From positions 248,001-312,000 of the forward strand of contig JBLDXI010000064.1 in the NCBI GenBank assembly GCA_047495785.1: 64,000 bases of DNA, read 5' to 3'. The notes under the pieces are model-generated. The model was not told the origin of the DNA and searched no databases. It saw nothing but the letters and a program-made list of their open reading frames with translations. Shown piece after piece: positions 31,081 through 61,078 of the stretch. Numbering within the stretch: the first letter of the stretch is position 1; every line of letters starts with the position of its first letter. Made by a program: the position numbers and the translations under genes. This DNA is from Lepidodermella squamata (Eukaryota > Animalia > Gastrotricha).

Positions 31081-33362
31081 TCAAGAAATATTTGTTAATT
31101 GAGCACAGTGAAATAGTGACAAATTAGCTCGACTCGCGCCTCGTGAAATCAGCACATCTGCCACAGTAGTTCTATCTTGACATATTGCGAGAACTAGAGC
31201 ATTATGGCCATTGATATTTCTGACATTCATCCTAGCACCTCTATCTAGCAGCAGTTGAGCAAGATCGGTCAACCCAAGCATAGACGCATGCATCAAAGAC
31301 GTGTTGCCATTGTTGTCAACGACCTCGATGGCAGCATTACGATCAAGAAGCAGTCGAACTGTATCGACCTTTCGTCGCATTGCGTTTGTAAGGAACCACT
31401 ATTTAAAATTTCACGATGGATTTCTTATGAATAATAATGATTGAGTAGCTCCTTTCAAACGCAACGCGACGCTTTCCAGTCACAGCAGCATTCAACAACG
31501 CCTTCGAGCCGTCAGTATCTTTAACATCGATGTCTGGTCGAATTTGCCATCCGTGGACTCGTCGATTTCCGCAATGAGTTGCCGCACCTGTGATACGTCG
31601 TCCGTAAAGGCTGTTACACTCCACAACTGCTCGTACATTTCCCCAATCTATACACGTGGACGAGATTGATTATAGGATAACGGATAACCATGAAGATTCC
31701 CGACACGCTGTATACCAAGCATAATTAATAAAAACATAGACTATGGAGGAATCTGCTCTACTTACGGACAGGTTCTTACTGTTTAGAGTTTTCTTACTAA
31801 ATTTTTTAAGGAATCGCTTTAATCTAGCGCTACACCAGAAAGAAATCACCGTAATTCATTTATCAAAAGAATGAATTTAGTTTCGGTATCTGAATTCATG
31901 GGGAAAAATTCATGGACATTAATTTAATTCCAAAAACTCAAAATCACCCAAATTCTGGGGCACAATTTTCGAGCAGATATACAAGAACTATCCTATTGTT
32001 TTATCCCATGGTTGGTGCTTAGCTGGCCGTTTATTGACAATCGAAAATCAAATCAAATCGATGGTCCAATACAAAGCAGAAGGCTTCAAAGCTGGAAACC
32101 CCAAGAGGGGTGCAAACGCCACGCATCAATAAATCGAATTAATTACGATAAAATTCTGCGTAATTTTCTGAATATGGGCTCATCACAACTTCAAGAGCCA
32201 GGCTTATGAATTTTGATAAATTTTCGAAAGACGACTTTTTTGACCAAATTGAGGTCTGAGCTACATTCTGAGCTACATATATATCATTACTTATGTTCCT
32301 CAATTTTTGGTGTAAAAAGCTAGAATAGCTGACCATCATGTTAGTCTGATTGGTTGAAAATCAGAGGCTAAGCCTGAACGCCTACTGCCTACTGGGAGGA
32401 CTGTTTAGTGCGTTCACCCTTCTTTGAAGCCTTTTGCTTTGTGAGGGACCTGAATCGATAGCAATACGATTTTATCGATTTTAACGATAGAACTAATCAT
32501 ACAAGTATGAAACAGGGTGACAGGGTTCGAGCGGCCGCGGGAATACTCTGTCGAGCAGTTCTGATAAGATCGAACTTGAAGATCCACCTTTCTGGGGATC
32601 TCAGGAAGCCCAGCTGAAATACGAAATAGCACGGGAAAGTAATTCTTATCGAAAATAGTAGTATTGAGACCTACTGTTTGCAAAATGACCCCAGCCAACC
32701 GCGACCGCCGAATCACATCCGTCGATGGAATTCGCTGTATCTGAAATGTCTTGGCACATGGCACTCGCGTCGGGTAAACATATTGGTCTGATCTCCTGTG
32801 AGAATCTGGGGACAGGGCTCATCAATCGCAGTAGAGCGAAATCATAGTCATAGAAATTCCGCCGCCCATCGTATAGCGGATGAACCAAAGGTGGCAGGGA
32901 CACAAAAGATTCGTATGAGGCTTTCTCCGAACGAACACTTATGTTGTGCCGACCTAGCAACGCTTTGATCCTGTAACAGCTAACATTAGACCATCAAACG
33001 GGGGAAATTACGAAAGATTACAAAATCGGCGTCTCCCCAGCATTCCAAACGCAATGAGCAGCTGTAATCAGCCATTGCCTCGATATGAGAGACGCTCCGC
33101 AATGTAAGGTTGACGTTTTGCCGCTGTTATAAATTTCAAGGAAGACCTAGCTCAACATCTCGCTTTTGCTCAGTTGAATGCATTTGGCTCAGTTTGAACT
33201 AACCAACCATGGGTAGTCATGTGCCTTTACTCGCTGACTGCCCGGGCCTCCTGATTTCGCCACAGCAGTGGGGCTCGCAATTCCACATTCGAGATCATGG
33301 GAATCATCTAATCCGAATACCAAACCAAGGAAAACTGTGGTGATAGTTGTGAGATGGCGCAT
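31081..33362 (-). pseudogene. Protease-CCP-ankyrin paralog, internally deleted
   Basis: Signal exon ending YPWL, TAAHC exon and DFALL exon present. Exon 4 breaks off near 32518 before GDSGG and the CCP-coding sequence is absent. Ankyrin exon starts tag|IGEMYEQLW, is frameshifted and ends with the C-cap AICQ..RGASRA. Confidence 0.85.
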
Positions 33363-36827: not shown

Positions 36828-36914
36828 TCGGAACATTCGTCGTGCGAAGTGTGAGGAGAAGTGAAAGATCGAAATAAAAGGAAAATGCTGATTTATCTGA
36901 TACTTTGAATCATC

Positions 36915-37162
36915 CAGTGTGCGACTTTCAGGGGGGGATGGGGGGGATCATCCTCCCCAGCTCGGCCGGGCCAGACAGCAAAATGAGAATGTATCCCACG
37001 GTCTTGTTAATTTTGGAAGGTTCTGGGGCGTGTTTTAGTGAAAAATCTCCAAAATTTTCTCGCTTCGCTCGGTTATTAGCAGAAATGACTCGTCATTTTG
37101 GCAAAAACAGCAAACAAATTTTTTCCATCCCCGGGAGTTCGGGGATCGAAGATCGCACCCTG
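36915..37162 (-). mobile_element. hAT-like MITE
   Basis: TIR cagtgtgcga / tcgcaccctg; 8-bp TSD gaatcatc at 36907-36914 and 37163-37170. Confidence 0.88.
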
Positions 37163-37170
37163 GAATCATC

Positions 37171-38027
37171 TCCTCGGGACGTTATCATGGAATCCATCCA
37201 GCCATCGTTATCTTTCGCATCGACCGCAGCGTTTCGATCTAGTAACAGTCGATCAACTGCGATTTGCCCTTTCAAAAAAGCTCTCATCAATGCTGTAAAG
37301 CCATCGTTATCTTTCGCCTCAGTTGAAGTGTTACGGTCCAGCAACAGTTGAACTACTGCGACTTGCCCTTTCGGAACAGCACTCATCAACGCTGTTAAGC
37401 CATCGTTATCTTTCGCTTCAATTGAAGCGTTACGGTCCAGCAACAGCCGTACCACTTCGATTCGCCCCGCCGCAACTGCATAGATCAACGCGGTCCAGCC
37501 ATCGTTATCTTTCGCATCGACCGCAGCGTTTCGATCTAGCAACAGTCTAACTAATGCGACTTGCCCGCTATTCGCTGCATACATCAACCCTGTCACGCCA
37601 TCGTTAACTTTGGCCTGGATAGAAGCGTTCCGGTCCAGTAGCAGTTGTGTTGCTGCGACTTCCCCTGTCGTAATTGCATGCATCAACGGCGTGAAGCTCT
37701 TGTTATCGTTTGCCTCGTTGGCAGCCTTGCGATTCAACAAGAGTCGTAAAGCTTCGATTCGCCTATTCATGGCCGCATGCATCAACGCCGTCCAGCCCTT
37801 GATATCCCTAGCCTCTATATTAGCATTTCGATTTTTCTACTTCGGTTTTTCCAGCATTGACAGGAAACATCAACGCCGTAGAGCCTAACTTATTGTATGC
37901 CTCGATAGAAGCGTTCTCGAATATCACCGGCAAAACAGCTCTAGATTTCGCATTTTGTCAAAACAAAACAGCCGTGGCCGATCTTTTGAGGTCGCGAGGA
38001 GCAAGCCGAGCAATATCAACATGTTGA
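37171..38027. pseudogene. Orphan ankyrin fragment: about 6-7 internal repeats on minus (about 37190-37920) abutting a C-cap on plus (about 37920-38027)
   Basis: LLLDRNA.(I/V).AKDNDG repeats on minus with a frameshift near 37830; plus strand GKTALDFAFCQNKTAVADLLRSRGASRAISTC*. Confidence 0.8.
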
Positions 38028-41800: not shown

Positions 41801-44800
41801 AATTCGCCCTCTTGGATCAGATAGGCGGTAGCCGTCCCTAATCTGTATTGAAATCCAACATAGTTCCACTGATTCAGCAACAGTTTTATCGGCGAAGTTA
41901 GCGTGAAAGGCGACGTTGCACCTTTGCAAAGAGCGACAAGTTGAAGGTAGCCGGTCGAGGATGCCCTCAATCCCACTGCAAAAGCTGTTGAATTCAACGC
42001 ATCCGTCCAGCCCATCAACAATCCGCCAAAACTAGCCGGTTTGAAATGAAACAGGAGAGTGACTGACCGGAGATAGACGGTGAAGCGGCTATTATCAGAG
42101 TTTACCCAGAGATAATCCATTTGAGAATTGAGCTTCAGCGCGCTAAATTAATAGAAAAAAACAACTGCTATTTTTTCGACGCAAGTTTTGAATTACGTGT
42201 TATTGTAGCTGAGCACATTGTCGCACGTCGGGTTTCCAACCGCTTTGAAAGCACTGCTCGGTGTGATAAGATCAGCTAGGTTGCAGGCTAACGGATACAG
42301 CACAGCAGGCGTCGGGGCTGCAAATTGTGATTAAATTTGAGCCAAGTTGCCTTTGAGCAAGAACTCACGAGTCCAAGGAGCTTGGGCACTTTGATCAATC
42401 TCAGCGTTGTCCAAAGCCCGCTTGTATATCTGGATGTGCGATAGCCTCCCGGTCCACGCGCCTCCCACCACGAGGTATGCATTCACTTTGACTGCAGTCG
42501 ATGTAAAGCAGCTGACCGCATAGATCCCGCGCATGATGCGATCGATGAAAGCACGAGCAATACCCGCGCGGCAGTCGAATGTCACAGCGGTGTGAACCCA
42601 GCGATTTTTATCGATGATAACATAACCCTGGGTTTTAGGGAAACTCACCGAGTCGTTGCATGCCCGAGATTGATCCACTAGAAATGTCCCGGTATCGTTA
42701 ATCCAAATTCGCATACACATACTAGGGAAAAGGGAAATATCTTGTCAATAGACAAGCGTGGGATACTGTGAATTCATCACCAAATTGAATTCATTGAATT
42801 CAGTACCAAAAATCATTGAATTTTGTACCAAGTTTTTCCAATCGGTTCAATCGAAGTCACAAATTTAAAGACCCAGAGTCTAACCCGAACCCTAACCCTA
42901 ACCCTAACCCTAGCCCTAACCTTAACAAGCTAAATAACGGAATAAACTCGTTAGGTATTGAATTAAATGAAATTTGGTGCCGCATAAAGATGTTCTCAAC
43001 AAGAGTCAATGCTGTGACTTACTTTCCTTGAGTTGAGCTGACCAAATTGAGAATGCCGCTCGTGTGCCAAACCCATGCTGAAAATGTCCAGCCATTATTT
43101 TTGTCAGCAGCCAAATAATCCATCGGTAGAAACATTTTGCCTGAGCCTGACCACGCGAGGGCTGACAGAGCTCGCCCAGTAACGCCTAAGCCGAATGTCA
43201 GCCCGGTTGAGTAGACGCCGTTGTTGCCATTGCCGCTCAGATCGTCAGCTCGGCGCAAGATGTCCAGAGGCCAGTAGCCATCTGGGACGAGTGTGAAGGC
43301 CGGGTCGAGTTGCGGGGTAGTAATTTCTACAGACGTGATAGTTTTCGTCTCACCCAAATCAATTGTAACGTAAGACCGCTGGAAAGGATCGCCACCACCT
43401 GATCGCAGCTTCGTGCAGTTTGTGATACTTCTCTCTCGGATGACACGGTCGCTAGTCAAAACTGAGGCACCAGGCAGCCCAAGCAAGGCATCAGTCGCTA
43501 GGTCATACGCTTTGGCTATAGGAGCTTTGAAGGCAATATTCGATGTATACCTTGGGATAGTTTTACAGCCAAGCAGCTCGATTTTGTAACAAGGCTTCGC
43601 GCCAGAGAATGAAATCGGCTCAATCCTGAAGTATTGCGCAACAATCGGCCTCGGGAAGACAACTGTTGCGATCTTCATCGCGTCGATGTTACCCGTTAAA
43701 GCAGCTTGGCCATTATTGTCCTGCAGCTCAGCCCAGTTATCGCCCGAACTTGCCTTGTAGCCTAAACTAAAGACTTGGACCCAAGAATTAAGCATGGCAC
43801 AGCCCTGAATTTGAACAGCAGTGACCACGGTCTGTTTTCTCAAGTCGATTACCAATGGCATGCTGTTAGCATACGCAGCCAGGCCCCAATTCAGCCGTGA
43901 GTAATACGGCTTTGCTACTGCAACAATTTCAGTCGAAATTTGAGAATCTTCAATTTCATTAGTTTCCATGCCTAGAGGCTCGAAGCAATTAGCTGGAGAG
44001 CCCTTAACTGCCACTTTAGCTTTGCTTTGAACACTCGTTCTATTCTCGAATGTATTTGTAAATCTGACATGCTTTGTAAGAACTGGTCGGAAAGGCGTGA
44101 AAATCGTAGTTTTGCCGCTGATAGGATTCCAGAATCTGTTCTCACCGTGGCCATTATCAATCGATTGAAAGGCCAAACCATCAAAACTCCACTCTAATTT
44201 CACCTTTAGTAAACAGTCGAACCTGCAGTAAAACTGGAATTCCGTCATCCAAACGAAGCGTTGGAGATCGATTTTAAACCAAGTACCAACGGGAGGATTG
44301 TTGGCGAACCCGAAGTAATGCGGATGATTTTCGTAGAGATGACCAAGCGGCGGCTTCTCGTCGCTATAAGCAGAGCTCGAAGAGTAACCCAAGTCAGTTA
44401 CGTAAGAATTGTCAAAGTCAACAATTTCACCGCCTGAAACTTGCAGCAACAAGCTAGGCGCGGTCCACGCTGATTTGAGTATTGCATCCCATGTCGCTGT
44501 TACCGCACAAGAAGATTTCGTCGAACACTGGCGCGATTTCTTCATCAGACCCTGCGATGCCACTGAGAACGAAGTTGCGTCTGCATTTGCTAGGACTTGG
44601 GCAATTGCCGAGCCAGGCAAGTCAAAGCTCCATAGGTCGCAGGTTTGGTTAGTCGCCGTGAATTGACCAGACCTACAGAGCTCGTTCGAATTACACGAAG
44701 TCATGCAGTTTACGGCTGATTGAACTGAGCTTAGATTTCCAACGAGGTGGATCGAGAGGTTGTAGCCGGCCTTAACTGGGCCGAAGGCCATTCCGGGGTA

Positions 44801-44866
44801 GATGTTGTAGTGATAACCTCCCGCAGCAACGCAGTGGCATAGCGCGGCCGTTAGAAGCAAAATCAT
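38814..44866 (-). CDS. Large secreted mosaic protein (about 1695 aa): PAN/apple-like, discoidin (F5/8 type C) x2, LamG/pentraxin-like domains, discoidin x2, C-terminal galactose-binding/fucolectin-like domain
   Basis: 8 exons (43023-44866, 42369-42721, 42197-42317, 41059-42142, 40545-40662, 40157-40485, 39970-40108, 38814-39913) total 5088 nt in frame. Motifs C..SC....CRS.QF....C.L; PLGME..I.DSQI; IDL..VTAVQIQG; WVHTAVTFD; WFLIDIG; GRYIRI..FSEILVY. No TM segment seen. Confidence 0.88.
42881..42921. repeat. Short interstitial (CCCTAA)n/(TTAGGG)n tract inside an intronic repeat element
   Basis: taacccgaaccctaaccctaaccctaaccctagccctaacc. Its flank (ttgaattcagtacc..cattgaattttgtaccaa) recurs near 19755-19795. 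Confidence 0.75.
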
Positions 44867-47536: not shown

Positions 47537-50500
47537 TCAACATATAAATTTTGCCCGACTAGCTCCTCGTGAAATCAGCAAATATGCCACATTAGTCTTT
47601 TTCAGGCATATAGCGTAATCTAGAGCATTATAGCCTTTCGCATTTATAATATTCACGTTTGCACCTCTATCCAGCAGCAGCCGAGCAACATCGGCCCACC
47701 CCTGCATAGCCGCATGTATCAACGCCGTTTGGCCTTCATTACTCATGGCATCGATGGCTGCTTTGCGATCGAGCAACAGTCCAACCACTTCGACTTGCCC
47801 ATCCCGAGCCGCATATATCAAAGCTGTCCAGCCATCATAATCTTTAGCCTCGATGGAGGCGTGGCGATCCAAAAGCAGTCGAACGGTATCGACATGCCCA
47901 TTTGCAGCCGTCTCCATCAACGCCGTCGTGCCATTTATGGTATTGACGTCAATGGAGGCGTTGCGATCGAGCAGCAGTCGTACAGCCTCGACCTGGCCAT
48001 ACATGGCCGCATAAATCAACGCCCTGTACCCATCATCATCTGTAGCCTCGATGTCAGCTTTGCGATCCAGCAACAGCCTAACTATTTCAACGTTTCCTTG
48101 CTGGGCGGCGTACATAAGAGCGGTTTTGCCAATGTTATCTTTGGCTTCCTTAGCTGCTTTGCGATCCAATAGCAGTCGCACTGCATCGACATGATTAAAC
48201 GCAGCCGCATATATCAAAACTGTCAAGCCATTAATATCTTTAGCCTCGATAGAGGCGTGGCGATCCAAAAGCAGTCGAACTACTTCGATATGTCCATGCC
48301 ATGCCGCAATCATCAATGCCGTCGCGCTATATTTATCCTTGGCCTCAATGGAAGCGTTGCGATCTAGTAGCAGTCGTACAGCCTCGACCTGGCCATACAT
48401 GGCCGCATAAATCAACGCAGTACAGCCATTTTTTTCTTTGGCCTCCACGTTTGCTTTGCGATCTAGCAACAGTCGAACTACTTCGACTTGCCCATCCCGA
48501 GCCGCATATATCAAAGCTGTCCAGCCATCATCATCTTTAGCCTCAATGGAAGCGTTGCGATCGAGCAGCAGTCGTACAGCCTCAACCTTTCCGAAAATAG
48601 CCGCTTCCAGCAATGCTGTCGTGCCATTGTTATTTTTTGCCTCGATGGCAGCTTTGCGATCTAACAAGATCCGCACAGCTTCAACATGTCCCTTCGATGC
48701 CGCCCGCGTTAACGCCGTCCAACCATCGTTATTCTTGGCTTCGATAGTTGCTTTGCGATCGAGCAACAGCCGAACCACTTCCATTTTTCCCCTCGAAGCA
48801 GCAAGAATAAGCGCCGTGTTGCCAACGTTATCTGTTTCGTCGATGGAAGCGTTGCGATCCAATAACAGTCGCACAGCTTCAACATGCCCAAACAACGCCG
48901 TCCACATCAACGCCGTCCAGCCGTTGTTGTCCTTTGCATCGACGGCAGCATTACGATCCAGTAAAAGACGCACTACTTCGATTTCTCCTTCCACAACAGC
49001 AAAAGTCAGTGCTGTGTAGCCATTAGCATCACTAGCCTCGATGGAAGCGTTGCGATCGAGTAGCAGTCGTACAGCCTCGACCTGGCCCAATTTTGCCGCA
49101 AACATCAATGCCGTCGTGCCATTGTTATTTTTTGCCTCGATGTCAGCTTTGCGATCCAGCAGCAGCCTCATTATTTCAACGTTTCCTTTAAGTGCGGCGT
49201 AAATCAGCGCAGTCACGCCAGTGTTACTCCTGGCTTCAATAGCTGCTTTGCGATTCAATAATAGTCGCACGCTTTCGATTTTCTCTTGTAAAGCCGCTAG
49301 AATTAACGCTGTTGAACCATCGTTATCCCTGGCCTCGATAGCAGCGTTCCGATCCAATAACAGTCGGACAACTTCGATTCGCCCACTACGTGCTACGTGC
49401 ATCAATGCCGTCCGGCCTTCTTTGTCTTTGGCCTCGATGGCGGCCTTGCGATCTAACAACAGTCGAATTGTATCGACTGGCGCGTTTAAAGCCCCAAACA
49501 TCAAAGCCGTCATGCCCATGTTGTTCTTGGCCTCTAAATCAGCGTTCCGATCCAGCAACGTCCGCACTGCTTCGTTTTTCCCAGAGACAGTCGCATACAT
49601 CAAAGGTGTGGTGCCACTAATATGATCCTTAGCCTCTATCTGAGCGTTGCGATCCAATAGCAGTCGTAAAGCTTTAACCTGCCCCCTCGTTGTCGCAATA
49701 ATCAATGCTGTCAAGCCCCATTCATTCGTGGCCTCGATGGCAGCGTGGCGATCCAGTAACAGCCGAATGGCTTCGACCTGCCCAGCCCCAGCCGCAACCA
49801 TCAACGCCGTCAAGCCATCGTTATTTTTTGTCTCGATCGAAGCGTTCCGATCTAAAAAGAAGCGAACTACTTCGATTTGCCCATTGCCAGCCGCATACAT
49901 CAACGCCGTCGCGCCATTGCTATCCTTGGCCTCAATCGAAACATTCCGATCTAAAAACAAGCGAGCTACTTCGACCCGTCCATAACTAGCCGCAAACATT
50001 AACGCCGTCGTGCCATCGATATTCATTGCCTCGATCGAAGCATTACGGTCCATCAAGAGTCGAGCTGCTTCGACATCCCCATTAAAAGCCGCTGCCATCA
50101 ACGGCGTCCTGCCATAGCTACCCTCCTGGACATTCACATTAGCACCGCGGTCGAGAAACAGCCGAGCAATTTCCACTCGCTGTCCCGGTTTCTGATTGAT
50201 ACACGCCCAAATACTATGAAGCAGGGTGCTATTCTCTGTAATCCAAGTATCGCAGGTATATACATTGGGATTGCGCCAGTTCGGGTCGAACTTGCCGCCA
50301 GTGGATTCGTCGATCTCCTCAACAAGTTGCCGCACCTGCTCTACGTCACCTGTCTCAACTGTTACATTCCACAGTTGTTCGTACACTTCAGGGATCTAAA
50401 GAAAGATTGATTCCTCGAACTATTGCATTGCATTGTGAAACTCACAGGTCTTTGCTTTGCCGACACGCAAGAACCAGGCTGGGACCACGTGAAGTTCGAG

Positions 50501-53500
50501 AGGCACGAAATGGAAGCATTTCCTCGAATCTTAAAATCTTGGTCGCATGATATGCTTCGAACAGCCCCGACGCTCGATAGACCAGGCGCTATGGCGCCGT
50601 TTTTTATCGTCTGAACAGCAACGCAGCCTTTAGGGCACGCATTACAGATGGCGAGGGGAATAAAGCATTGACTTACCTGTACGGTTACACCTTCCAGTTA
50701 TCCCTGGACGGAATGGAGGAAAGCAAGAGGCGATTGATACAGATGCGGAGTACGTGAAACCAGGGTCGCATTTAACGCTCACCACCCCACCTCTCTCTAT
50801 CACCGTTCCAGGCCTTACAACTGAGCCAGTATCTTCCGAAGTTTCTGGGTCCACACGGGTTACAATTCCCGCTGTTATGTTTGGTATGACACAGGACTGC
50901 TGCTGAGTACTCAACTGGCTTCGAACTTCTATGTTCTCCGAAATCCAATCGAGAACCTTACAGACTCTGCTGTAGATGCCGGGGGTTTGCCCATTACATG
51001 TCTCATTGGCTTTAGAAATGATGCCAAGCAGGTATGTTTTTCTCGACATCAGGCACATAAGAGGGCCCCCAGAATCTCCAAAGCAAGCATTGCTGCCGTC
51101 AGCGGCTAAACACATTTTCGAATCGGTCATATTGACTGGATTCGAGCGGCCTCGGGAATACTCCATTGAACAATTTCGGTACGATCGAACTTGAAGATTG
51201 AGCTTCCTCGGGATCTCTGATATTCTGGCTGCAAAACATTAATGCTCTGTAACGATGTGCAACATAGCTAGCCCGTAAGCACCAGATAGAGAAAACTATG
51301 TTTTAGTTGCTGATTAGCCGATTTTCAAATTTTCTCTCTCGGATGAAAATCACCTGTAAACCTTGTTTGTTCTTTCTAGTTAAAGCGCTGATCTCTCCAT
51401 TCCATTTTTCATTTTTCATTTTCATATTCCAAGCCATCTTCATTGCGTCTTTATCATCTGCTCACGGAATATCTGTTTTTCATTGTGAAATTCCATTTTT
51501 CTAATCTCAAATTAATTATCACCCCTCTGAAATTATTTATGCCTTGGTCCTAAAATCAGTCGGCCACTGTGTTGACCATTGTTCGGATTAAAATCAGACC
51601 GGCGGATTTTATGAGCGAGCCGCCGGTCTGATTTGTCTTAACTCGAACGAAGGTCAACTCAGTAGCCGTCAGATGGCAGAGCAAAAATTAAGACAACCCA
51701 AAAAGAGACAGGACAAAAAAATAGGTTAAGGAGAAAATGGCGAAAATAGAGCATGCTCCAACAAATTCCTGGCTTAGGTAAAGGTAAAAGGCCACGTTGA
51801 AAATAGCAAAAAATTAACTAAAATGGCTTGGCTAATGGAAAAGAGCTCAATATTGAATCGAGACAATAATTCGTTCTAATTTGATTTGAGCAATTCACCC
51901 CGTTTTCTACGCAGAGATTCAGAATAATTCCAGAATTCAAGAGATTAGAACAGGTTTGAGGGAAAGACACCGTTCTCATTCATTTTAGATTAATTTGTTC
52001 AACGTGATCAAAATTTTTGGATTTGCCAATTGCCAATTTTCGATCAGCTGGTGCTTTAATTTGAAATCAAACGGCAATGAACGGGCAATGCCGTGAATAT
52101 CGAATTGCAGGCCGGAAAGAGTAATAGGGTTAGATCCCTCTATAAATTTTAGGAGCAGTTTGATGGCAACTGAAATTTATCGCCTAAAACTGTATTTAAA
52201 CAAAAAACGGAATTGTTTTTACACTAGATAATATAGAGCTAGGTCTGACAATCTACATCACCTGAAAGCTAAATAATTACTGAAAATACCTGAAATTGAG
52301 CCGTTCTTGCCACCTTCGGTTAAAAAGAATCTATTCAAACCTCCAAAACTCAGCTTAAAACATGCTAGTAGCTTTCGAATCAAAATTCTGAAAAATGAAG
52401 CCCGACTAATGTTTACGAAGTCCATGTGTCTTAGTCCAAAGGAAAAAAAAATCAGTCTCTTTTCCGTCGTGACGCGGATTACTACTAGGACAAGTCGCAG
52501 ATGGGTGATAATAAGTATATTGCCTTATTTGTAATTTTAGGCAATATACTAAGGCAATATATTATAAATAAGAAGAATTTCACAATGAAAAAGTGAATTT
52601 TCCGCTAGCAGATGAAAAAGACCCATTGTTGGCTGCATCAAATTTCGAACTAAGTTGATTACCGACTCGAAGTTTAAGAACAAGGCGTTCTCGAATGGGA
52701 TCAGAGAATTCCCTACACCCCCATACAACGACCTACTTCAGAGATAATATAGCAAATAAAAAATTGTCATGCCCAAACAATTTCGGAAAATCAAAATAAA
52801 ACATTTACGGGACACATTTTTATCTACGGGAAGCGAAAATTCTCAGCACGGATAAACCTATTTTTCAAATTTTCAAAAAATTACCAACCACGGCAGATGA
52901 ATGGCGATTTTGCGAAAAACCAAAATTATAGCCCTTTTTGGCGGCTTTTAGACTATTGTCCGTATTTTTGGAATTAATTAAAATCATAATTCGCGGATGG
53001 GGGTTAGGTTGCCTAGAAAGTAATCGCGTGCCGCACTCTTTGCAAATTAAGCTCGAATATATTCACTATGGGAAGATTGTTAGTTCCCTATCTCCTATCT
53101 GTTACAGTATTTTCTATGGCTATTAGTTATTACCCAATTCCTGTATACGAGAATGACCTACTGCGAGAAAAATGACCCCAGCCAACTGCGACCGCAGAGT
53201 CGCATCCGTCAATTGAATCCGCAGTGAACGAGTTGGACCGACACATTGAAGTCGCTTCAGGTAAGCAAATCGGCCGTATCTGCTGTGTGAATCTTGAAAC
53301 TGGGCTCGTCAACCGTAAGAGAGCGAAATCAAAGTCGTAGAAATTCTGACTTCCGTTGTAAAGCGGGTGAACTAAAGGCGGCAGAGTCACAAGAGATTCG
53401 AAAGATGGTGTTTCCGACCGAATACTGATATTATGTCGACCTAGAGACGCTTTTATCCTGTTCAAACATAGAATAGAATATAAGTTAGAAGGGGATTAAT

Positions 53501-53850
53501 AATTTAGAAAACCCACAAAACGGGCGTATTTCTGTTTTTCCAAACGCAATGAGCAGCTGTTATCAGCCATTGCCGCGAAATAAGAGACGCTCCGCAATAC
53601 GACGCCGATGTTTCGTAATAAATCTCCAGTGAGACCTTAGAAAAGCATCATTTTTCAGTTCAATTGTATATATGGAAATCATTGCATTTAGGCAAACCAG
53701 CCATGGGTATTCATTTGGTTCTGTCGGGTGACTGCCTGGATCGCTTGATTTCGGCATTGTAGTAGCGATTACAGTACCGCATCCGAGATCTTGAGCGATG
53801 ACAACGCTGGAAATCAGCTCAAGGAAGGCCATAGCTTTAGGAAGATGCAT
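47537..53850 (-). CDS. Secreted serine protease-CCP-CCP-ankyrin repeat fusion, long form (about 1386 aa, 25 internal ankyrin repeats plus caps)
   Basis: Exons 53698-53850, 53517-53635, 53162-53457, 50677-51228, 50446-50627, 47537-50395 total 4161 nt in frame, all GT-AG. Triad TAAHC/DFALL/GDSGGP. 50-nt phase-0 intron joins ..CVSAKQRP to IPEVYEQLW. Confidence 0.9.
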
Positions 53851-53929
53851 TTTGAGTGACGCTAAGTTACACCATACAACAAAACTTGTTGGATGTATCC
53901 TCTTTCGTGATGAAAAACATCTGAAGCTT

Positions 53930-54020
53930 GCGTTCGTATATTTTATTCTATTAATTTTCTCTCGTGTTTTTCTGCTTCATCATTAATATTAATAAGATGC
54001 AGATAAAAGCCTGTTAACGT
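53930..54020 (-). promoter_or_regulatory. Conserved upstream block shared in inverted orientation with 55667-55757 (putative promoter/5'UTR, contains a GATA-like agataa)
   Basis: gttaaca.gcttttatctg.atctt.ttaatattaat..aaaacacga.agaaaa.ttaatagaataaaata precedes both protease-ankyrin ATGs. Confidence 0.55.
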
Positions 54021-54146
54021 TTTTTACTATGAAGGATTATTGTGCTATAGAATAACCTCCGGTTAGATATAGTACTAAGAAATAACAGTTGGCTAGTGGC
54101 CAACATGAAGCCAGTTATCGCCAAGAAAGCGGCTTATGTGCGAGTG

Positions 54147-54335
54147 CAGGGTGCGATCTTCGATCCGCGAGCTCCCGGGGAAGGAAACAATTTTTTTGCT
54201 GTTTTTGCCAAAATGACGAGTCATTTCGGCTAATAACCGAGCAAAGCGAGAAAATTTTGGAGATTTTCCACCAAAACACGCCCCAGAGCCTTCCAAAATT
54301 AACAAAACAGTGGGATAAATTCTCATTTTGTTGTC
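54147..54335 (+). mobile_element. Partial hAT-like MITE (family of 36915-37162)
   Basis: Starts cagggtgcgatcttcgatccc; closely similar to the reverse complement of about 36975-37162. Confidence 0.8.
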
Positions 54336-55796
54336 TTTTGAGGATTTTCCACTAGAAAAGGCTCCGAAACCTCCTAAAAATGAGGTTACAGCAGTCTTTT
54401 CCAGGCGTTACTTCGATTTTGGTTGTAACATTTGGTCCGATTGGTTGTTACATTGTAACATGTGTAACATGCTAAAAAAACACTGGTAAAGGTGATAATT
54501 ATCAGCAAATATTGGAAGCAAAATTACCCCCCATAACAGTAAGCTGATTAGGGTTCATTTCAGTATAACCCCTGATCAGGGTGCATATTACCCCTTGATC
54601 AGCTATACTAATGACTAGGAGCTATGACCCCTGATCAGCCCCCTTATCAGGGGTTAATTTTTTCTAGTGTAGTTCAAAGACGTTTTAGTAAATTAAATGA
54701 CCGGAAACAAGTGGAAAATTGGGGTCTGGCAAATGTTTCGTATTTTCCAAAAAATCAAAAAAGCGCATAAAAATAGCATTTATTGCGCGAGGGATAGATA
54801 TAATGCAGCGTTTCCCAAACCGTGTCCTAATATAGGACACTCGTGTACTTTGCCAACTTTCAAGTGTCCTGTAGGACACTGGTGTCCTACGGGCCTCAAA
54901 ACGACAAAAGGGCAACAATAGATTCACAGTAAGAAACAATGCATTTTGGACCATATTCAGACTATGAATCGGGAAAAAACCGGCAGCTAAAGCTCGCTTC
55001 GCTCGCGCTTTGCCTATTTATGAACTGTCTTATGGCGGATACCTCCGTTCGGACGGGCACAGGTGCTTTCATCGTGGCATGGCCGTAAGCGTATTATGGC
55101 CGAATCTCTGATCAAGAGACGATATTAAACGTTAGGATTAATTTTTGAAACTGGCTTTGTTATTCAAGTACGTCACAGATTGTACTTGTCGACATGACTA
55201 ATCGAAATTTCCTAATTGAGAGCAAAAGCTCCAGACTGAATTTCTGTACAAATTTGTAAGACTTTTTACGGTGTTATGCGTCATTTTCCAGTGTCGATTT
55301 CTTAAAATTTCCTCGCTTCGCTCGTGGTTAGTTTAAATTTCACCTGGGATTTTCTCAATTTCGAGCTAGGTTGCCTTCAAAATTCTCTTCAATTTTTGCC
55401 AAACCCCACTTTTCACTTATTTCCGGTCAAATTATTATTACGCCACATTAGTTTATATTAATTAGGTAGAATGGTAAAATGGCGGAAATGAGTCATGCCT
55501 ATGTTATGCCTGCCGCAATACCATGAAGCTGCTTTAACTTCAAAAATGTCAACGGCTCACCCAACTACTGTAGTAAGGCCTGTTTCGCAATATACAGTAC
55601 CTATCAATTGTCATTGTTAACACTTATTTATAATCAAAACATCTACCCTGAGTATTGACGATAGCATGTTAACACGCTTTTATCTGTATCTTCTTAATAT
55701 TAATATTAAATTAGCAAAACACGATAGAAAAATTAATAGAATAAAATACTCGAAAGCTATTCTCACATAACGTTTTGCTGCATGCTGTAATTTGGC

Positions 55797-58700
55797 ATGC
55801 CCATTCTCAAAGCTATCACCTTGCTTGAGCTGATTTCTTGCGTTGCCATTGCTCAAGAATGCGGTACTGTAATCTCTACCTCAACGGCGAAATCCACAGG
55901 CCCGGGCAGTCATCCAGCAGAGGCACATGAATATCCATGGCTGGTTTGTAATTTTGAATCTGTTATTTTTTTTTATATAACCGAAAAAGATGTTTCTTGA
56001 AGGTCTTCCTTGAAATTTATCACAGCCGCGACACATCGGCCGCATATTGCGGCGCTTCTCTCATTTCGAGGCAATGGCTGATTACAGCTGCTCATTGCGT
56101 CTGGAATGCTGGAGAGACTCCAATTTTGTAAGATTTTTTGTTTTATTCTCTTATCAGATATGGCGAAACTTTTTTATTTACAGAATAAAAGCTATGATTG
56201 GGCGTCATAACATCAGTGTTCAATCAGAAAATGCCTCTCGCGAGTCTCTCGTGGTTCTGCCGCCTTTGCTTCATCCGCGATACAGTGGGAGTCGGAATTT
56301 CTACGACTTTGATTTCGCTCTCTTACGGTTAAGGAGCCCAGTTCCAAGATTCACACAGCAGATACGACCGATTTGTTTACCTGACGCGACTCTAATGTGT
56401 CGGTCCAACTCGTTCACTGCGGATTCAATTGACGGATGTGATTCGGCGGTCGCAGTTGGCTGGGGTCATTTTGCTCACAGTAGGTCATTATCTTAAACAG
56501 GAAATAATAGCTCGGTAATCGCTTGGATTTTTTTACTGTTCACGTAATTTGAATGTATTTTGTCTCTTCTATATGAAGATATGATCCTACGGATCTACGT
56601 CATTTCAGAAAATTAAAATCATTTTTATTTTAGCGATATTTCAGTACTCAACGCGTCATTTCAGAATCGTAAAACTCAGAAAAATGAATTTTGTAAATAT
56701 TTTGAATAACTCCGAAACTCAGAAAACTCAGAATTTATTTGAATTTTACTTCGAAAACTCCAAAATCTCCGAATATTATTTTACAAAATTATTCTAATAG
56801 CCTAGGACAACTTTTATAGGTCCAATCCGCCACTAGATCGGGATGACCTCAGACCCGTTCCATTTTGTGTTCGCGTGCCGAATAAAGTTATCCGGTCGTC
56901 GCCCGGGCCACTGCCATGTCGCACGTCATCCCCGTCCTGGTCAAGAGGCGGAAGATCATCATAGTCGTAGCGAGGGAAAATTGTCGAATTAAGAGGGACA
57001 TTTTGGTGATTTTCAACTGTGAGAATGAGAGAATTAGCAACTTCCATACATTTGCATCTGTTTATGGCACACCAGACATTTGTGTGAGCCTTCCAAACCC
57101 TCAAAAAATTCGGTGTTGACAAACTGAGGCAAGAATTTGACAAACTAGGCACGTGCCTCGTGTGCCCATGCGTTGAAACGGCCCTCGAAACCCCCCGATG
57201 CATCTCGAAGTAAATGATCGCAGCCCTCGTCGCAACTTTACTCGCCCGATTCTCCTTGGCCGACTACGACCGAAATTCTGGCTTCCGAAATCGGCCAGCG
57301 GCCCATCAGATTCAGAAGTGGAGACAGAGTTACGAGAAGGTGATGAAGCCCCATCAGATGACGCCTCGTGTTCTGAAATGACGCTCAGAATGATCATTAA
57401 TTAATTTTCCGAAGTGTCGTGTGCTGAATTTTCGCGAAATTTCAGATCAAAATTTCTGAAATGTCGTTACACGGATCCTAGCTCTCAAACCGGGGAAGGA
57501 ACGGCGAAGAATGACAATTCAGCTACGTAGCCTAGTGGGTAATTCTCAACTCCGGTCTGTCTAATTCTTATAGTTTCAAGTAACTCAGTGCCTCAATTTA
57601 AATGACATTAGGTTTCTAGAGGCGCGATGCATATGCTCCCATGTTTTATAGCCCTTTTAATTAGCTTCATCGTTGTTTCCCTTCAGCTAGGCTCTCTGAG
57701 ATCCCGAGGAAGCTAGACCTTCAAGCTCGATCGTACCGAAACTGCTCAATGGAGTATTCCCAAGGCCGATTGGATCCGGTCAACATCACCGACTCGAAGA
57801 TGTGTTTCGCTGCCGATAAAAGCGACGTTTGCTTTGGAGATTCCGGTGGCCCTCTCATGTGTATGAAATCAAGGCAGACTTACCTGCTAGGCATTATTTC
57901 GAATGGAGATGATTCATGCAAAGGATACACTCCTGGCATCTACAGCAGAGTCTGCATGGTTCTCGATTGGATTTCGGAAAACACTGATGTTCGAAGCCAG
58001 ACGAGCACTCCCGATCAGTCTTGTACCGTACCGAATATCACCGCGGGATTTGTAACTCGAGTGGACCCAGAAACTTCGGAAGATTCTAATGAAGTTCTAA
58101 GACCTGGAACAATCGTGGAAAGTGGTGAAACTGTCGGCATCAAATGCAACCCTGGTTTCTCGTACTCCGAGTCCATCTCGACTGCATCGTGCTTGCCTCC
58201 ATTCCTTCCGGGGATTAATGGAAGGTGTAACCGTACAAGTAAGCAAATGCAGCGTTTTCTTTAATATATGACGCCATTTTTGCCTCCAAGGCTGTGGTGC
58301 CGTTCGGACCGTTCAAAACGGCTACGTAGCGCCTGGTCTATCGGGAGTTGGAGCCACCAGGAACATATCATGCAAACAACATTTTGTGATTCGCGGAAGT
58401 GCTTCCATACTGTGCCTCTCGAACTTCACGTGGTCGCAGCCTGGTTCCTGCGTGCCGGCAAAGCGAAGACCTGTCAGTTTTCTACAAAGATTCACTTCAT
58501 TTTTTCAAACAGTTTCGTCTTACCCAATTCTTGTTTGGCACAGAAACAAAAAACAAAATGTCATTTATTACTTTTATTTACCTAAATTCACTTTTGTGGA
58601 ACAAAATTTGGCTCCGTTCCCTACCGTTCCCTACCAGTGCCGGATTTTCCATTAGGCAAACAAGGCAATTGCCTTAGGGCCCCGCGATTTTCGGGCCCTT

Positions 58701-61078
58701 CAAATCCAAAGGGGGACCCTTATGCCCCAAGGGCCCCCATATTTTTTTACTCTAGTTTGAAAATTCCACCTTTTGATTTGTGAAAACGGCTTCAACGGTC
58801 AATTTTTCGGCCTTTGGACGGAGCTTTTGGATAACAATTTTGAAAAAATGTGCTCGCTTCGCTCGCACTCGTCTACTTTTTCCAGTCCGGTCTAAACTCT
58901 CCGAACAAACCTTACAAATCTGTAAGGCTGTATGCTCTAAAAATCTGGCACTATTGTGTGCAGGAAGCATTCGCATTATAAAACGAATCAATCAAACCCT
59001 GAACTTAACGTAATGTTGCTATTGGTATAAGAGTTCTAAATCACTATATTTTTCCTGCATGTTATCAATGTGAAAACTAAAAATTTTAAGTTATCAGCAA
59101 AAATTCAAGATAAAAGGTCTTTTCAAGTAAAAGGTTGGGGAAACTAGTATTTTGTCCATTTTAAAGTGAGTTTGGCGGGCTTTTTTCATTGAAAAAATCC
59201 CGAAATTTGCTCGCTTCGCTCGAATTAATTGGTTCAAATTACATGTAATCTCCACAAAAGCCGCGGCAAAGTTTTCAGCTAAAAAAGTGGTCCAATTGGG
59301 TCTAGCTCTCAGGTGGTATATTCAGTCATTCAACTGTACCTAACAACTGTTTGAATTTAAAATCAAAACAGTGCTCCGGGTACGGGGGGTAAGGGGGGAA
59401 AACGACCCCCCCCCCCCTTGGCGTTCGAAAGTTTCTGAAAAACGTAAGGGTCCTCCCTGTTGATTTGCAAATTTTGGGCTCAAAATAGCTCCATTTACCC
59501 CCCTCAGAGCTGGACCTAGTCGGATCACTGAATCAAAATCTAAATTTAATCGGAAAACCAGGTAATATGTACATAATCTTATGGTGTCAGTGCCGGATAT
59601 TCCCAGCTTGAAATTCCTCGGGGCCCTAGGAAATTGGATATTTGTTAATTATATTTTGCCGTGGCTTTGGTTGAGATTAGCACATGTAATTTGAACCAAT
59701 TAATAAAAAGTATTTAATACCAATCAATAAGGGAAGCGAGCAAATTTTGGGCTTTTTCAATAAAAATAGCCCCAAACCCTCTTAAAAATATCCAAAGTGC
59801 TCATTTGCTTTGTCTTTTTCTTGAATTTCGGCTGTCTACTTCCAAATTTCGGTTTTCACATTGGTAAAATGCAGGAAAATAACATGATTTAACTCTTCAA
59901 ATTGTTTCAAAATTGTGGTCCAAACGCATTAGAGTCCAATAACTATGTCCTCCTTACGGCACTGTAATCAGTTGTCAATTGTGCTATGCCTTCATCTTTA
60001 GGTTCGTGAAGTGTACGAGCAATTGTGGAATGTATCATCATTGACGGGCGATGTGGCGCAGGTGCGGCGACTCGTCGCGGAGATCGACGAATCCACTGGC
60101 GGCAAGTTCGACCCGAACTGGCGCAACCCTAACGTTTCTTACTGCGATACTTGGACTACACAGAATGGCACCCTGCTTCATAGCGTTTGGCTGTGTTCAA
60201 ATCGAAAATCGGACCAACGACTGGAAATTGTTCGGCTGTTGCTTGACCGCGGGGCTGATGTGAATGCCAAGGAGGGTGCCGCTGGCAAGACGGTGTTGAT
60301 GGCAGCGGCAATTATTGGGGATTCAGATTCAGCTCGCCTGCTGCTGGATCGCAGAGCTGACATTGAGGCTACAGATGACACTGGCTACACGGCGTTGATT
60401 CATGCGGCAAAGGAAGTGCAAGTGGAAGCAGTACGGCTATTACTCGATCGCAACGCTTCAATCGATGCCGGTGATATCGAAGGCTTCACGGCATTGATGG
60501 CAGCGGCTAATAATGACAAATTCGAAGTGGTACGGCTGTTACTGGATCGCAATGCAGCCATCAATGCCACGGATGTAAATGGCTTGACAGCGTTGATGAA
60601 TGTGGCTAAGAACCGGCAAGTCGAAACTGTTCGACTATTACTAAGTTTCAGGCCTGACATTGAGGCGAAGGATGCAGATGGCGCGACGGCGCTTTTACAT
60701 GCCTCTAGTAGAGGGAATGTCGAAATTATGCGCGTTTTGCTTGATCGGAACGCTTCTATCGAAGCTCGGAATAACAAAGGCGAGACAGGGTTAATGAGCG
60801 CGTCTGTGGTTGGAAATGTTGCCGCTGTAAAACTGTTGCTGGATCGCAACGCTTCCATTGAGGCCAAGGATAACAATGGCGAAACAGCGCTGAGCTATGC
60901 GGTTTTGTTCGACCGCGTCGAAGCCATTCGACTGTTACTAGATAGAGGAGCTAATATGAATGTCATAAATATCTATGGCTTGTCGGTTCTAGATACTGCA
61001 GTTTGTGATGAAAGAATAGCTTCGGCCAATCTGCTGAGGTCGCGAGGAGCAATTCGAACAAAGTCGCCATGTCGTTAG
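55797..61078 (+). CDS. Secreted serine protease-CCP-CCP-ankyrin repeat fusion, short form (about 792 aa, 7 internal repeats plus caps)
   Basis: Exons 55797-55943, 56003-56127, 56184-56479, 57687-58238, 58291-58472, 60002-61078 total 2379 nt in frame. Same intron phases and exon 3-5 lengths as the minus copy; ..CVPAKRRP joins VREVYEQLW. Confidence 0.88.
59369..59530. mobile_element. hAT-like MITE in intron 5
   Basis: TIR cagtgctccg / cggatcactg; 8-bp TSD aatcaaaa. Confidence 0.85.

Follow-up and report, generated by a model that had tools for sequence, protein, structure and literature searches.

Ankyrin repeats are in animals normally an intracellular binding module, and the locus described here raises the question of whether such an array can form part of a secreted protease. 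The window, a stretch of 64,000 nucleotides from the gastrotrich Lepidodermella squamata, carries two genes, copies A and B, each of which most likely encodes a secreted trypsin-type protease joined via two CCP modules to an ankyrin array, as judged from gene models and comparison among paralogues. This very unusual layout is precisely what MisPred rule 2 flags, since a combination of extracellular domains with ankyrin in a protein lacking a membrane segment is taken there as a likely gene-model error (PMC3927609), and this match counts against a fusion model. Comparative genomics lends good support to the predicted one-polypeptide architecture, as do signs of secretory-pathway adaptation in the ankyrin part, and both lines of evidence are set out below.

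Gene models of the two copies

Copies A and B are head-to-head paralogues, with A on the minus strand (53850-47537, 1386 aa) and B on the plus strand (55797-61078, 792 aa). Both full models give uninterrupted ORFs assembled from six exons, and the five introns of each copy are all GT-AG and identical between the copies in position and phase (0, 2, 1, 1, 0) (Table 1). The order of the predicted product is also shared: signal peptide, S1 protease, divergent CCP, Pfam-grade Sushi and ankyrin array. The initial annotation had proposed that the two ankyrin ORFs, listed from a GTG at 47537-50386 (minus strand) and 60011-61078 (plus strand), are really last exons, and this holds in the intact six-exon models, where the phase-0 GT-AG introns that it placed between the second CCP exon and the ankyrin exon were read in frame in both copies. 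Its further claim that a pseudogene in the window keeps the same acceptor position was also borne out, the N-cap fragment of this degraded paralogue beginning immediately past the acceptor (...gtgtatag/ATT), with 37 aa left of exon 4.

Table 1. Exons, selected introns and related features of copies A and B, with positions in the window
Feature	Position	Strand	Content
Copy A exon 1	53698..53850	(-)	ATG, signal-peptide-like N-terminus, propeptide-like CG...K segment; ends ...YPWL, phase 0
Copy A exon 2	53517..53635	(-)	S1 protease domain start, His57 (TAAHC); Pfam Trypsin 31.8 bits
Copy A exon 3	53162..53457	(-)	Mid-protease, Asp102 (DFDFALL); Pfam Trypsin 28.2 bits
Copy A exon 4	50677..51228	(-)	Protease C-terminal half, Ser195 (GDSGGP), then divergent CCP1; Pfam Trypsin 59 bits
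Copy A exon 5	50446..50627	(-)	CCP2 (Sushi), Pfam Sushi 32.1 bits; ends ...AKQRP, phase 0
Copy A intron 5	50396..50445	(-)	50 nt, GTGAGT...TTTAG, phase 0; CCP2 to ankyrin exon
Copy A exon 6	47537..50395	(-)	N-cap, ~26 ankyrin repeats, C-cap, stop codon
Copy B exon 1	55797..55943	(+)	ATG and signal-peptide-like N-terminus
Copy B exon 2	56003..56127	(+)	Protease, His57
Copy B exon 3	56184..56479	(+)	Protease, Asp102
Copy B exon 4	57687..58238	(+)	Protease with Ser195, then CCP1; Pfam Trypsin 62.3 bits
Copy B exon 5	58291..58472	(+)	CCP2 (Sushi), Pfam Sushi 30.1 bits
Copy B intron 5	58473..60001	(+)	1529 nt, GTCAGT...TTTAG, phase 0; full of dispersed repeats
Copy B exon 6	60002..61078	(+)	N-cap, ~9 ankyrin repeats, C-cap, stop codon
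Shared intergenic region of A and B	53851..55796	between divergent genes	Conserved promoter-proximal blocks ahead of each ATG; insertion of a high-copy repeat
Degraded paralogue	~31081..33332	(-)	Exons 1-3, truncated exon 4, N-cap fragment, eroded repeats; without CCPs

Predicted continuity across the CCP-to-ankyrin join

The join itself was followed across the family. The AG acceptor of the ankyrin exon is identical, falling in the same codon, in 30 of 30 paralogues, an agreement far beyond chance. On the upstream side, a phase-0 GT donor ends CCP2 at every locus where CCP2 was found. Protease, CCP and ankyrin exons are collinear in 21/21 loci, 20 of which yield intact ORFs, 614-1386 aa long, while in the gene models of four short paralogues the signal-peptide exon is spliced in phase straight to the ankyrin exon.

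An ankyrin exon expressed from its own start had been named beforehand as a finding that would speak against a fusion. No ATG lies near the start of this exon in any of the 30 paralogues, the first Met coming 17-164 codons in, and an in-frame stop stands at the acceptor in 26 of them, including copy A, where a TAG lies directly upstream of exon 6. The exon is nonetheless conserved from its first codon: over the first 100 codons the best 30 loci are 57-81% identical, with an omega of 0.1-0.6 that indicates purifying selection.

Intron 5 ranges in length from 50 to 1529 nt. If it were retained in copy A, the frame would shift and a stop would follow after 26 codons; no poly(A) signal was found within it. 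In copy B the intron consists of transposon copies that recur at other places in the genome; one such element, of ~165 nt, numbers at least 30 copies. When the genome was searched for an intronless (retro) copy with the 51-residue CCP2/N-cap junction peptide, no uninterrupted match was obtained, and the longer genomic matches arose by read-through and contained stops or were of low identity. A search for sequencing runs over the locus yielded no RNA run; the single run that covers it consists of genomic DNA contigs (unique depth ~22), in which the introns are covered and no splice joints occur.

Protease domain and CCP modules

Exons 2, 3 and 4 all exceed the cut-off of 20.6 bits for Pfam PF00089 (peptidase S1A; scores in Table 1), and in alignment the solved structures most related to the domain are chymotrypsins. 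The intact H/D/S triad reported in the initial annotation was recovered in both copies, and the full triad recurs in 16/21 paralogues, His57 being lost in the other five. Aligned to chymotrypsin, residue 189 is Asn in copy A and Asp in copy B, and a trypsin-like S1 pocket (Asp189/Gly216/Gly226) is found in copy B and most paralogues, which would therefore be expected to cleave after Arg or Lys. The canonical zymogen activation site (Arg/Lys-Ile-Val-Gly-Gly) is absent; the segment reads KSS-DPGS in A, KST-GPGS in B and R/K-GPGS in other paralogues, and because xPGS takes its place, protease activity is uncertain. Of the earlier proposal of a protease aimed at its targets by a binder, the architecture is supported; the missing activation site and the loss of the catalytic His in a quarter of the paralogues examined qualify the proteolytic part. 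Protease and CCP1 together have an omega of 0.07-0.31 in paralogue comparison (0.13-0.31 for the exon 4 part). A reading of the family as decaying pseudogenes was rejected, omega being well below 1 and the ORFs intact.

The pair of CCPs had also been called in advance, and the second stands firmly: it matches Pfam PF00084 (Sushi) above the cut-off of 20.7 bits in both copies and has four Cys and the motif FTWSQPGSC with its conserved Trp. The first is divergent, and its tentative assignment comes from four invariant Cys, with no Trp, and a moderate fold match. Of four copies scanned for this module, three matched Sushi and no other Pfam family, scoring 14-16 bits (14.4 in A) and below the cut-off, and the fourth gave no Sushi match. 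AlphaFold2 returned one model at pLDDT 74 and four at 43-55; nearly all top Foldseek matches of the CCP1 model are CCP modules, with TM ~0.6 and E > 0.01.

The ankyrin array and its probable adaptation to secretion

The ankyrin exon is matched by the ankyrin families PF12796/PF00023, with Ank_2 scores of 639 bits in A and 275 bits in B and a repeat period of 33 residues. Exon 6 of copy B was modelled by AlphaFold2 at pLDDT 93.8 and is helical from residue 2; the model superposes on the ankyrin-B and ankyrin-1 solenoids with TM 0.84-0.85, and the best fold matches of the array include DARPins as well as ankyrin-B.

Repeat number differs among paralogues, from about 3 to 27, and so do the residues of the binding face. 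Entropy is maximal at repeat positions 3, 4, 6, 11, 14, 15 and 17, and five of the six positions randomised in DARPins are among the most variable. Omega is 0.16-0.8 for the framework and reaches 1.2-3.0 at binding-face positions defined a priori, exceeding 1 in several paralogue pairs, though these values come from few codons and can be inflated by repeat misalignment. The variability peak on the canonical binding face, together with the raised omega there, is compatible with the variable recognition module that had been suggested for these genes.

A Cys pair is present in the N-cap at 30/30 loci and in the C-cap at 19/21, the internal repeats are almost Cys-free, and the sequons N10 and N55 are kept at 25/30 and 29/30 loci; for these reasons the array fits a secreted protein. 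The N-termini of all 21 loci, encoded by a homologous exon, have a basic start, a hydrophobic core of 10-14 residues and V-x-A before Q-D/E (VVAQ(D/E)), features read by eye and hydrophobicity as a putative signal peptide; the core of copy A contains a Glu. No transmembrane segment was found, the best 19-residue hydropathy window beyond the N-terminus being ≤1.5. In copy A the protease and CCP portion contains 20 Cys, and this even number is compatible with full pairing. A membrane protein of type I whose ankyrin part faces the cytosol was rejected, given the missing hydrophobic segment and a linker of ~10 residues.

A large family and its nearest known systems

The genome-wide count that the initial annotation had proposed gave ~46 copies of the protease and a minimum of 150 ankyrin exons, some of which may be haplotigs; for arrays without a protease, upstream sequence was read within 1.5 kb. 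HSP70 from this genome shares only 77-78% identity with mollusc and other animal proteins, COX1 was not found in the assembly, and the genome was placed as that of a bilaterian, probably a protostome. We conclude from these comparisons that A and B are probably intact members of a large, lineage-specific gene family, each encoding one soluble secreted protease-CCP-CCP-ankyrin polypeptide. No relatives of the family were found in the protein libraries searched: the N-cap gave generic ankyrin matches only in a set of 5.8 billion proteins, the ESM Atlas yielded only generic ankyrin clusters, and an exon 4 profile run against 1.84 billion representatives retrieved ordinary or multi-trypsin proteins, with ankyrin in 0/10 of those scanned. 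The literature searches likewise turned up no trypsin-ankyrin architecture, in agreement with the initial annotation, which had not recognised this combination.

In C1r, C1s and MASP the domain order is CUB-EGF-CUB-CCP-CCP-protease, and the CCP pair of C1s and MASP acts as spacer and exosite. These mosaic S1A proteases, like the trypsin-Sushi proteins, are secreted and combine a chymotrypsin-fold protease with CCP/sushi modules, as predicted for A and B. In contrast to C1r/C1s/MASP, the CCPs of A and B lie C-terminal to the protease, CUB and EGF are missing, the activation site departs from the canonical motif and an ankyrin array follows the CCPs. Trypsin-Sushi proteins exist in sponges, ctenophores and cnidarians, and ankyrin is nowhere named in a survey of the domains that accompany trypsin across animals (PMC6767649). 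The Toxoplasma protein RON9 and its apicomplexan orthologues do combine a signal peptide, ankyrin repeats and Sushi in one secretory-pathway protein (PMC3299665). RON9 differs, however, in that it belongs to the rhoptry neck of a protist, lacks a protease, has only 5-6 ankyrin repeats and carries PEST repeats and a C-terminal membrane segment, and it has no sequence relationship to the A/B family.

Alternative readings of the locus

The fusion could be a precursor that is secreted and then cut at the basic CCP2/N-cap linker, either by a convertase of the furin type or by the trypsin-like domain of the protein itself, so that the halves act separately. We consider this unlikely. A basic motif does end the CCP2 exon in almost all paralogues (AKQRP, AKRRP, SRQRRP, PRRRRT), most of them have Asp189, and short ankyrin-only forms exist, but a Pro, poor for both trypsin and furin cleavage, usually follows the basic pair, and the linker is only ~10 residues long.

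It is distinctly unlikely that the protein is a delivered effector or venom whose ankyrin array works, after export, inside a cell of prey, host or competitor or at the membrane of that cell, in the manner of latrotoxins and of ankyrin effectors from bacteria. The known animal example of a secreted product with ankyrin repeats, the latrotoxins, provides a precedent (PMC2517654; PMC13611351), and the large, clustered family with its fast turnover and pseudogenes would suit such a role. Like the proposed A/B product, the latrotoxins of widow spiders, with ~20 ankyrin repeats, act outside the producing cell (PMC2517654); unlike it, they have no signal peptide, protease or CCP and possess an N-terminal pore-forming part of their own. 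In Pfam scans of all exons of A and B the matches were Trypsin, Sushi and, for the ankyrin exon, families of ankyrin type plus weak chance matches over sub-stretches; latrotoxin N- or C-terminal domains and pore-forming or translocation modules were not among them. The disulfide-type caps and conserved sequons, moreover, suggest a protein that remains in an oxidising medium.

Two separate genes, with protease-CCP-CCP ending after exon 5 and the ankyrin exon reached through an unseen first exon or an operon spliced leader at the AG, would agree with the normally cytosolic place of ankyrin repeats but are very improbable: the gap in copy A is an intron of gene-typical size with no room for a promoter or further exon and no poly(A) signal, the family's signal-peptide exon is reused by the short forms, and conservation, the invariant Cys pair and the sequons begin right at the acceptor, so that ~100 conserved codons would stay untranslated in a leader-spliced mRNA, a spliced-leader or operon start being rejected for want of a conserved ATG.

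Proposed mechanism and function

If A and B are single secreted polypeptides, the ankyrin solenoid, which has its own disulfide-type caps, may use its hypervariable concave side to engage a macromolecular target, either extracellularly or within a secretory compartment. The two CCPs could then serve as a short stalk that spaces and orients the protease, and the protease, in copy B and in most of the paralogues, would cleave after Arg/Lys, either in the target so bound or in a substrate close by. Because the repeats, the binding face and the pocket vary, and because some paralogues are without the catalytic His or without the whole protease, ankyrin binding is probably the core function and proteolysis an added effector. 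Targeted proteolysis, in immunity or predation, may be the function of the family; venom and allorecognition are further roles suggested in the initial annotation.

A bolder reading, which we offer as a speculation with a low chance of being right in full, is that the at least 150 capped arrays form a germline repertoire of extracellular recognition proteins, ~45 of them wired via the CCP stalk to a protease effector, in innate immunity or in the targeting of prey, hosts or competitors. Such a repertoire would be a natural counterpart of DARPin libraries and LRR-based variable receptors, and part of a previously unknown recognition-plus-proteolysis system in an animal. DARPins and the lamprey VLRs (LRR) likewise vary one face of a fixed repeat framework; DARPins are man-made, however, and VLRs combine LRR with somatic assembly, whereas the diversity of the A/B family is germline, each paralogue having its own array. 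A large family of secreted ankyrin proteins that is maintained by selection would overturn the intracellular-only rule for at least one lineage and illustrate how a cytosolic scaffold can be adapted to work outside the cell. The family also hints at what may be a new type of protease system coupled to recognition, and natural disulfide-capped ankyrin binders would be of interest to protein engineering.

Haptoglobin and the arthropod SPHs are non-catalytic protease homologues used as binders, and the five paralogues that replace His57 similarly keep the fold, whereas copies A and B retain the full triad. The neighbouring genes are C-type lectin, F5/8C and LamG genes.

Gene models of the two copies

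The ankyrin reading frames that the initial annotation listed from a GTG (47537–50386, minus strand; 60011–61078, plus strand) and took to be last exons proved to be just that: each closes a six-exon gene, and the two genes, copy A and copy B, are divergently oriented paralogues. The introns proposed to lead in frame from the second CCP (Sushi) module, CCP2, into the ankyrin exon lie exactly where they were claimed (50396–50445, 50 nt; 58473–60001, 1529 nt). All 10 introns of the two copies have GT-AG borders, with phases 0, 2, 1, 1, 0 common to both, and the Pfam matches are Trypsin (exons 2, 3 and 4), Sushi (exon 5) and ankyrin families (exon 6). Upstream of the two start codons (53851–54050 and 55597–55796), both copies share the blocks GTTAACA.GCTTTTATCTG.ATCTT.TTAATATTAAT and GAAAA(A)TTAATAGAATAAAATA, and several paralogues share a GAAAAACACGA motif; together these are probably the family promoter, with a GATA-like TTATCT among them.

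Exons of copies A and B, and neighbour ORFs with C-type lectin, F5/8 type C or LamG-like domains (window coordinates; strand in brackets)
Feature	Copy A	Copy B	Neighbour ORF
Exon 1	53850-53698 (-)	55797-55943 (+)	
Exon 2	53635-53517 (-)	56003-56127 (+)	
Exon 3	53457-53162 (-)	56184-56479 (+)	
Exon 4	51228-50677 (-)	57687-58238 (+)	
Exon 5	50627-50446 (-)	58291-58472 (+)	
Exon 6	50395-47537 (-)	60002-61078 (+)	
Product length	1386 aa	792 aa	
Neighbour 1			3836-4186 (-)
Neighbour 2			11924-12373 (-)
Neighbour 3			36210-36824 (+)
Neighbour 4			38817-39938 (-)
Neighbour 5			41002-42120 (-)
Neighbour 6			43022-44866 (-)

Probable joining of the CCP and ankyrin exons

Among the sequencing runs searched no RNA run turned up for this animal; the single run covering the locus is of genomic DNA, and the join between the CCP2 and ankyrin exons was judged by comparing paralogous loci. 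In all 30 loci the ankyrin exon follows a pyrimidine-rich AG acceptor and starts at one common codon, and in 26 of them the TAG of the acceptor doubles as an in-frame stop; none of the 30 has an ATG near the exon start, with the first methionine 17–164 codons in. Protein-level conservation begins at the first codon past the acceptor (the best 30 loci are 57–81% identical across their first 100 residues), and the start of the exon shows an omega of 0.1–0.6 and holds an invariant cysteine pair and two conserved N-x-S/T sequons. In its predicted structure (pLDDT > 90) helix starts at residue 2, and the model aligns with ankyrin-B and ankyrin-1 over ∼345 of 358 residues. Taken together, these features mean that the codons must be translated from upstream. 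A spliced-leader or operon start of the ankyrin exon was rejected, as it would leave ∼100 conserved codons untranslated.

On the other side of the join, a phase-0 GT donor closes the CCP2 exon in every locus where CCP2 was found, and the exon order signal, His, Asp, Ser plus CCP1 (the first CCP-like module), CCP2, ankyrin is kept in 21 of 21 fully read loci. Of these 21, 20 gave uninterrupted ORFs of 614–1386 aa whose GT-AG introns occupy homologous positions; in the one remaining locus the CCP1/CCP2 intron has been lost. Intron 5 ranges from 50 to 1529 nt across the family with its phase kept. Dispersed repeats make up intron 5 of copy B; that of copy A, at 50 nt, matches the gene's other short introns in size (49–62 nt), is too small for a promoter and, if retained, would shift the frame to a stop. 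In four short paralogues a signal-peptide exon, ending in a GT donor, leads in phase straight to the ankyrin exon. A search for an intronless genomic copy carrying the CCP2/ankyrin junction found none. Because MisPred rule 2 would flag such a layout as a gene-model error (PMC3927609), the paralogue evidence carries particular weight, and from these comparisons a single secreted polypeptide running from a putative signal peptide through S1 protease, CCP1 and CCP2 to the ankyrin array appears likely.

Some variation accompanies this order. An additional CCP-like match lies between CCP1 and CCP2 in at least three loci, and a gap of ∼280 nt between the two modules suggests the same additional exon in up to six. 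At L043/L023 (G000:C4:318000-323100 in the assembly), CCP1 and CCP2 occupy one open frame with no intron between them, an intron loss within the family. Two of the dispersed repeats at 58520–59950, in intron 5 of copy B, are an element of ∼720 nt that contains an inverted repeat and one of ∼165 nt that has at least 30 copies at 86–94% identity.

Searches of two very large protein libraries returned no relative, nor did a literature search for a trypsin-ankyrin protein yield a description. The nearest precedents are mosaic S1 proteases with CCPs, the latrotoxins and TgRON9, in which a Sushi domain and ankyrin repeats occur together with a signal peptide (PMC3299665).

Protease and CCP modules

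The catalytic triad was correctly called intact, with His57, Asp102 and Ser195 in the motifs TAAHC, DFDFALL and GDSGGP. The proposed pair of CCP modules stands for CCP2, a Pfam Sushi; CCP1 was found only as a divergent module with Sushi below the cut-off. In Pfam scans of four CCP1 copies, Sushi was the sole match in three, at 14–16 bits and below the cut-off, and was not matched in the fourth; the four cysteines are invariant and the tryptophan is missing. One AlphaFold2 model, moderately confident at pLDDT 74, returned mainly CCP modules as structural matches (TM ∼0.6, weak E-values). We regard this module as probably a divergent CCP.

The nearest solved structures to the protease are chymotrypsins, and alignment to them gives copy B and most paralogues a trypsin-like pocket (Asp189, Gly216 and Gly226). 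Asp189 occurs at 15 of 21 loci, and the residues in copy A are Asn189 and Ala216. A canonical zymogen activation site is absent from the protease segment, which reads K-S-S-DPGS in copy A and K-S-T-GPGS in copy B, and several paralogues have R/K directly before GPGS. An omega of 0.07–0.31 (at dS 0.1–0.9) shows purifying selection on the protease and on CCP1. His57 is replaced in 5 of 21 paralogues, by Asp in L037, Arg in L041 and Gln in L051, L052 and L053 (contigs C42, C4, C85 and C64), and Asp102, Ser195 and the remaining gene are intact despite the lost histidine. These five are probable non-catalytic protease homologues, so that part of the family would lack catalysis.

Probable secretion and possible cleavage

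Trypsin and CCP domains are obligate secretory-pathway folds. The sole hydrophobic segment is the N-terminus, and no membrane anchor was found between CCP2 and the array, where the linker is ∼10 residues, or at the C-terminus. The protease/CCP part holds 20 cysteines in copy A and 21 in copy B (one in the putative signal peptide), which we take to correspond to the disulfides typical of S1A and CCP domains. At the ends of the array, cysteine pairs occur in the N-cap (30 of 30 loci) and the C-cap (…AIC…∼21 residues…C-terminal C; 19 of 21), and the hundreds of residues inside are nearly cysteine-free. Of 30 loci, 25 keep sequon N10 and 29 keep N55, their middle residue varying, and N-A-S recurs in the inter-repeat loop. 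Judged by sequence, the ankyrin part seems to have been adapted to the secretory compartment, and we infer the disulfides and the glycosylation.

The end of the CCP2 exon is nearly always basic (AKQRP, AKRRP, SRQRRP, PRRRRT; 50446–50466, 58452–58472 and paralogues); this motif abuts the N-cap and may be a processing site.

Ankyrin array and its possible function

Copy A has ∼26 repeats, copy B ∼9 and the paralogues ∼3–27. Across 240 repeats the framework positions are nearly invariant and entropy peaks at positions 3, 4, 6, 11, 14, 15 and 17; our mapping puts five of these among the positions randomised in DARPins. Using a position set fixed a priori, we obtained binding-face omega values of 1.2–3.0 in five paralogue pairs, whose framework positions gave 0.5–1.6, and a low value (0.14) in two near-identical pairs that are possibly alleles. 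These values suggest, short of proof, that selection on the binding face is relaxed or diversifying; the comparison covers few codons, and shuffled repeats can misalign.

Of the mechanisms considered, we favour, though only tentatively, proteolysis targeted through an ankyrin binder. Its rivals are a precursor in which the protease-CCP part and the array are separated after synthesis, and a delivered effector whose array acts in or on a target cell.

Family and genome setting

At least 150 N-cap/ankyrin exons were counted in the 121-Mb assembly, along with 46 protease/CCP1 exon copies (E ≤ 6e-60); when the two match tables are paired, ∼40 of the 46 have a same-strand N-cap downstream. The copies are clustered in tandem on a small number of contigs, and some may be haplotigs. 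Same-order locus pairs on C42 versus C36 and C64 versus C4 (e.g. L010/L012, L005/L006) differ by a dS of only 0.05–0.14. They may represent haplotypes that were not collapsed, in which case the copy counts would be too high.

Two of the four protease-less short forms, L011 (G000:C4:1788437-1791730) and L024, carry an exon 1 homologue (signal peptide … SWL|gt) upstream of the ankyrin exon. The other two, L019 and L025 (G000:C10), have a deletion-made 69-nt mini-exon that fuses the signal-peptide start to the last CCP2 residues (…CVPRQRRP|gt). All four are in phase with the ankyrin acceptor.

The window also holds one degraded family copy and one ankyrin fragment, a 230-aa array at 37093–37785 (minus strand) with the same consensus (LLLDRNA.IEAKD) but no N-cap, which adjoins a high-copy repeat and is probably a truncated family member. 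This repeat occupies 36905–37351 and 54000–54600, the latter between copies A and B, where contig depth reaches 9440 versus ∼22 for unique DNA; an ORF-like stretch of it (…YPTVLLILEGSGACF…) occurs again beside the fragment at 37 kb. With three confirmed C-type lectin-domain ORFs, two F5/8 type C-domain ORFs and one LamG-like ORF, the window is a neighbourhood of extracellular recognition-type (binding-domain) genes. One of the F5/8 type C ORFs has a PAN-like start.
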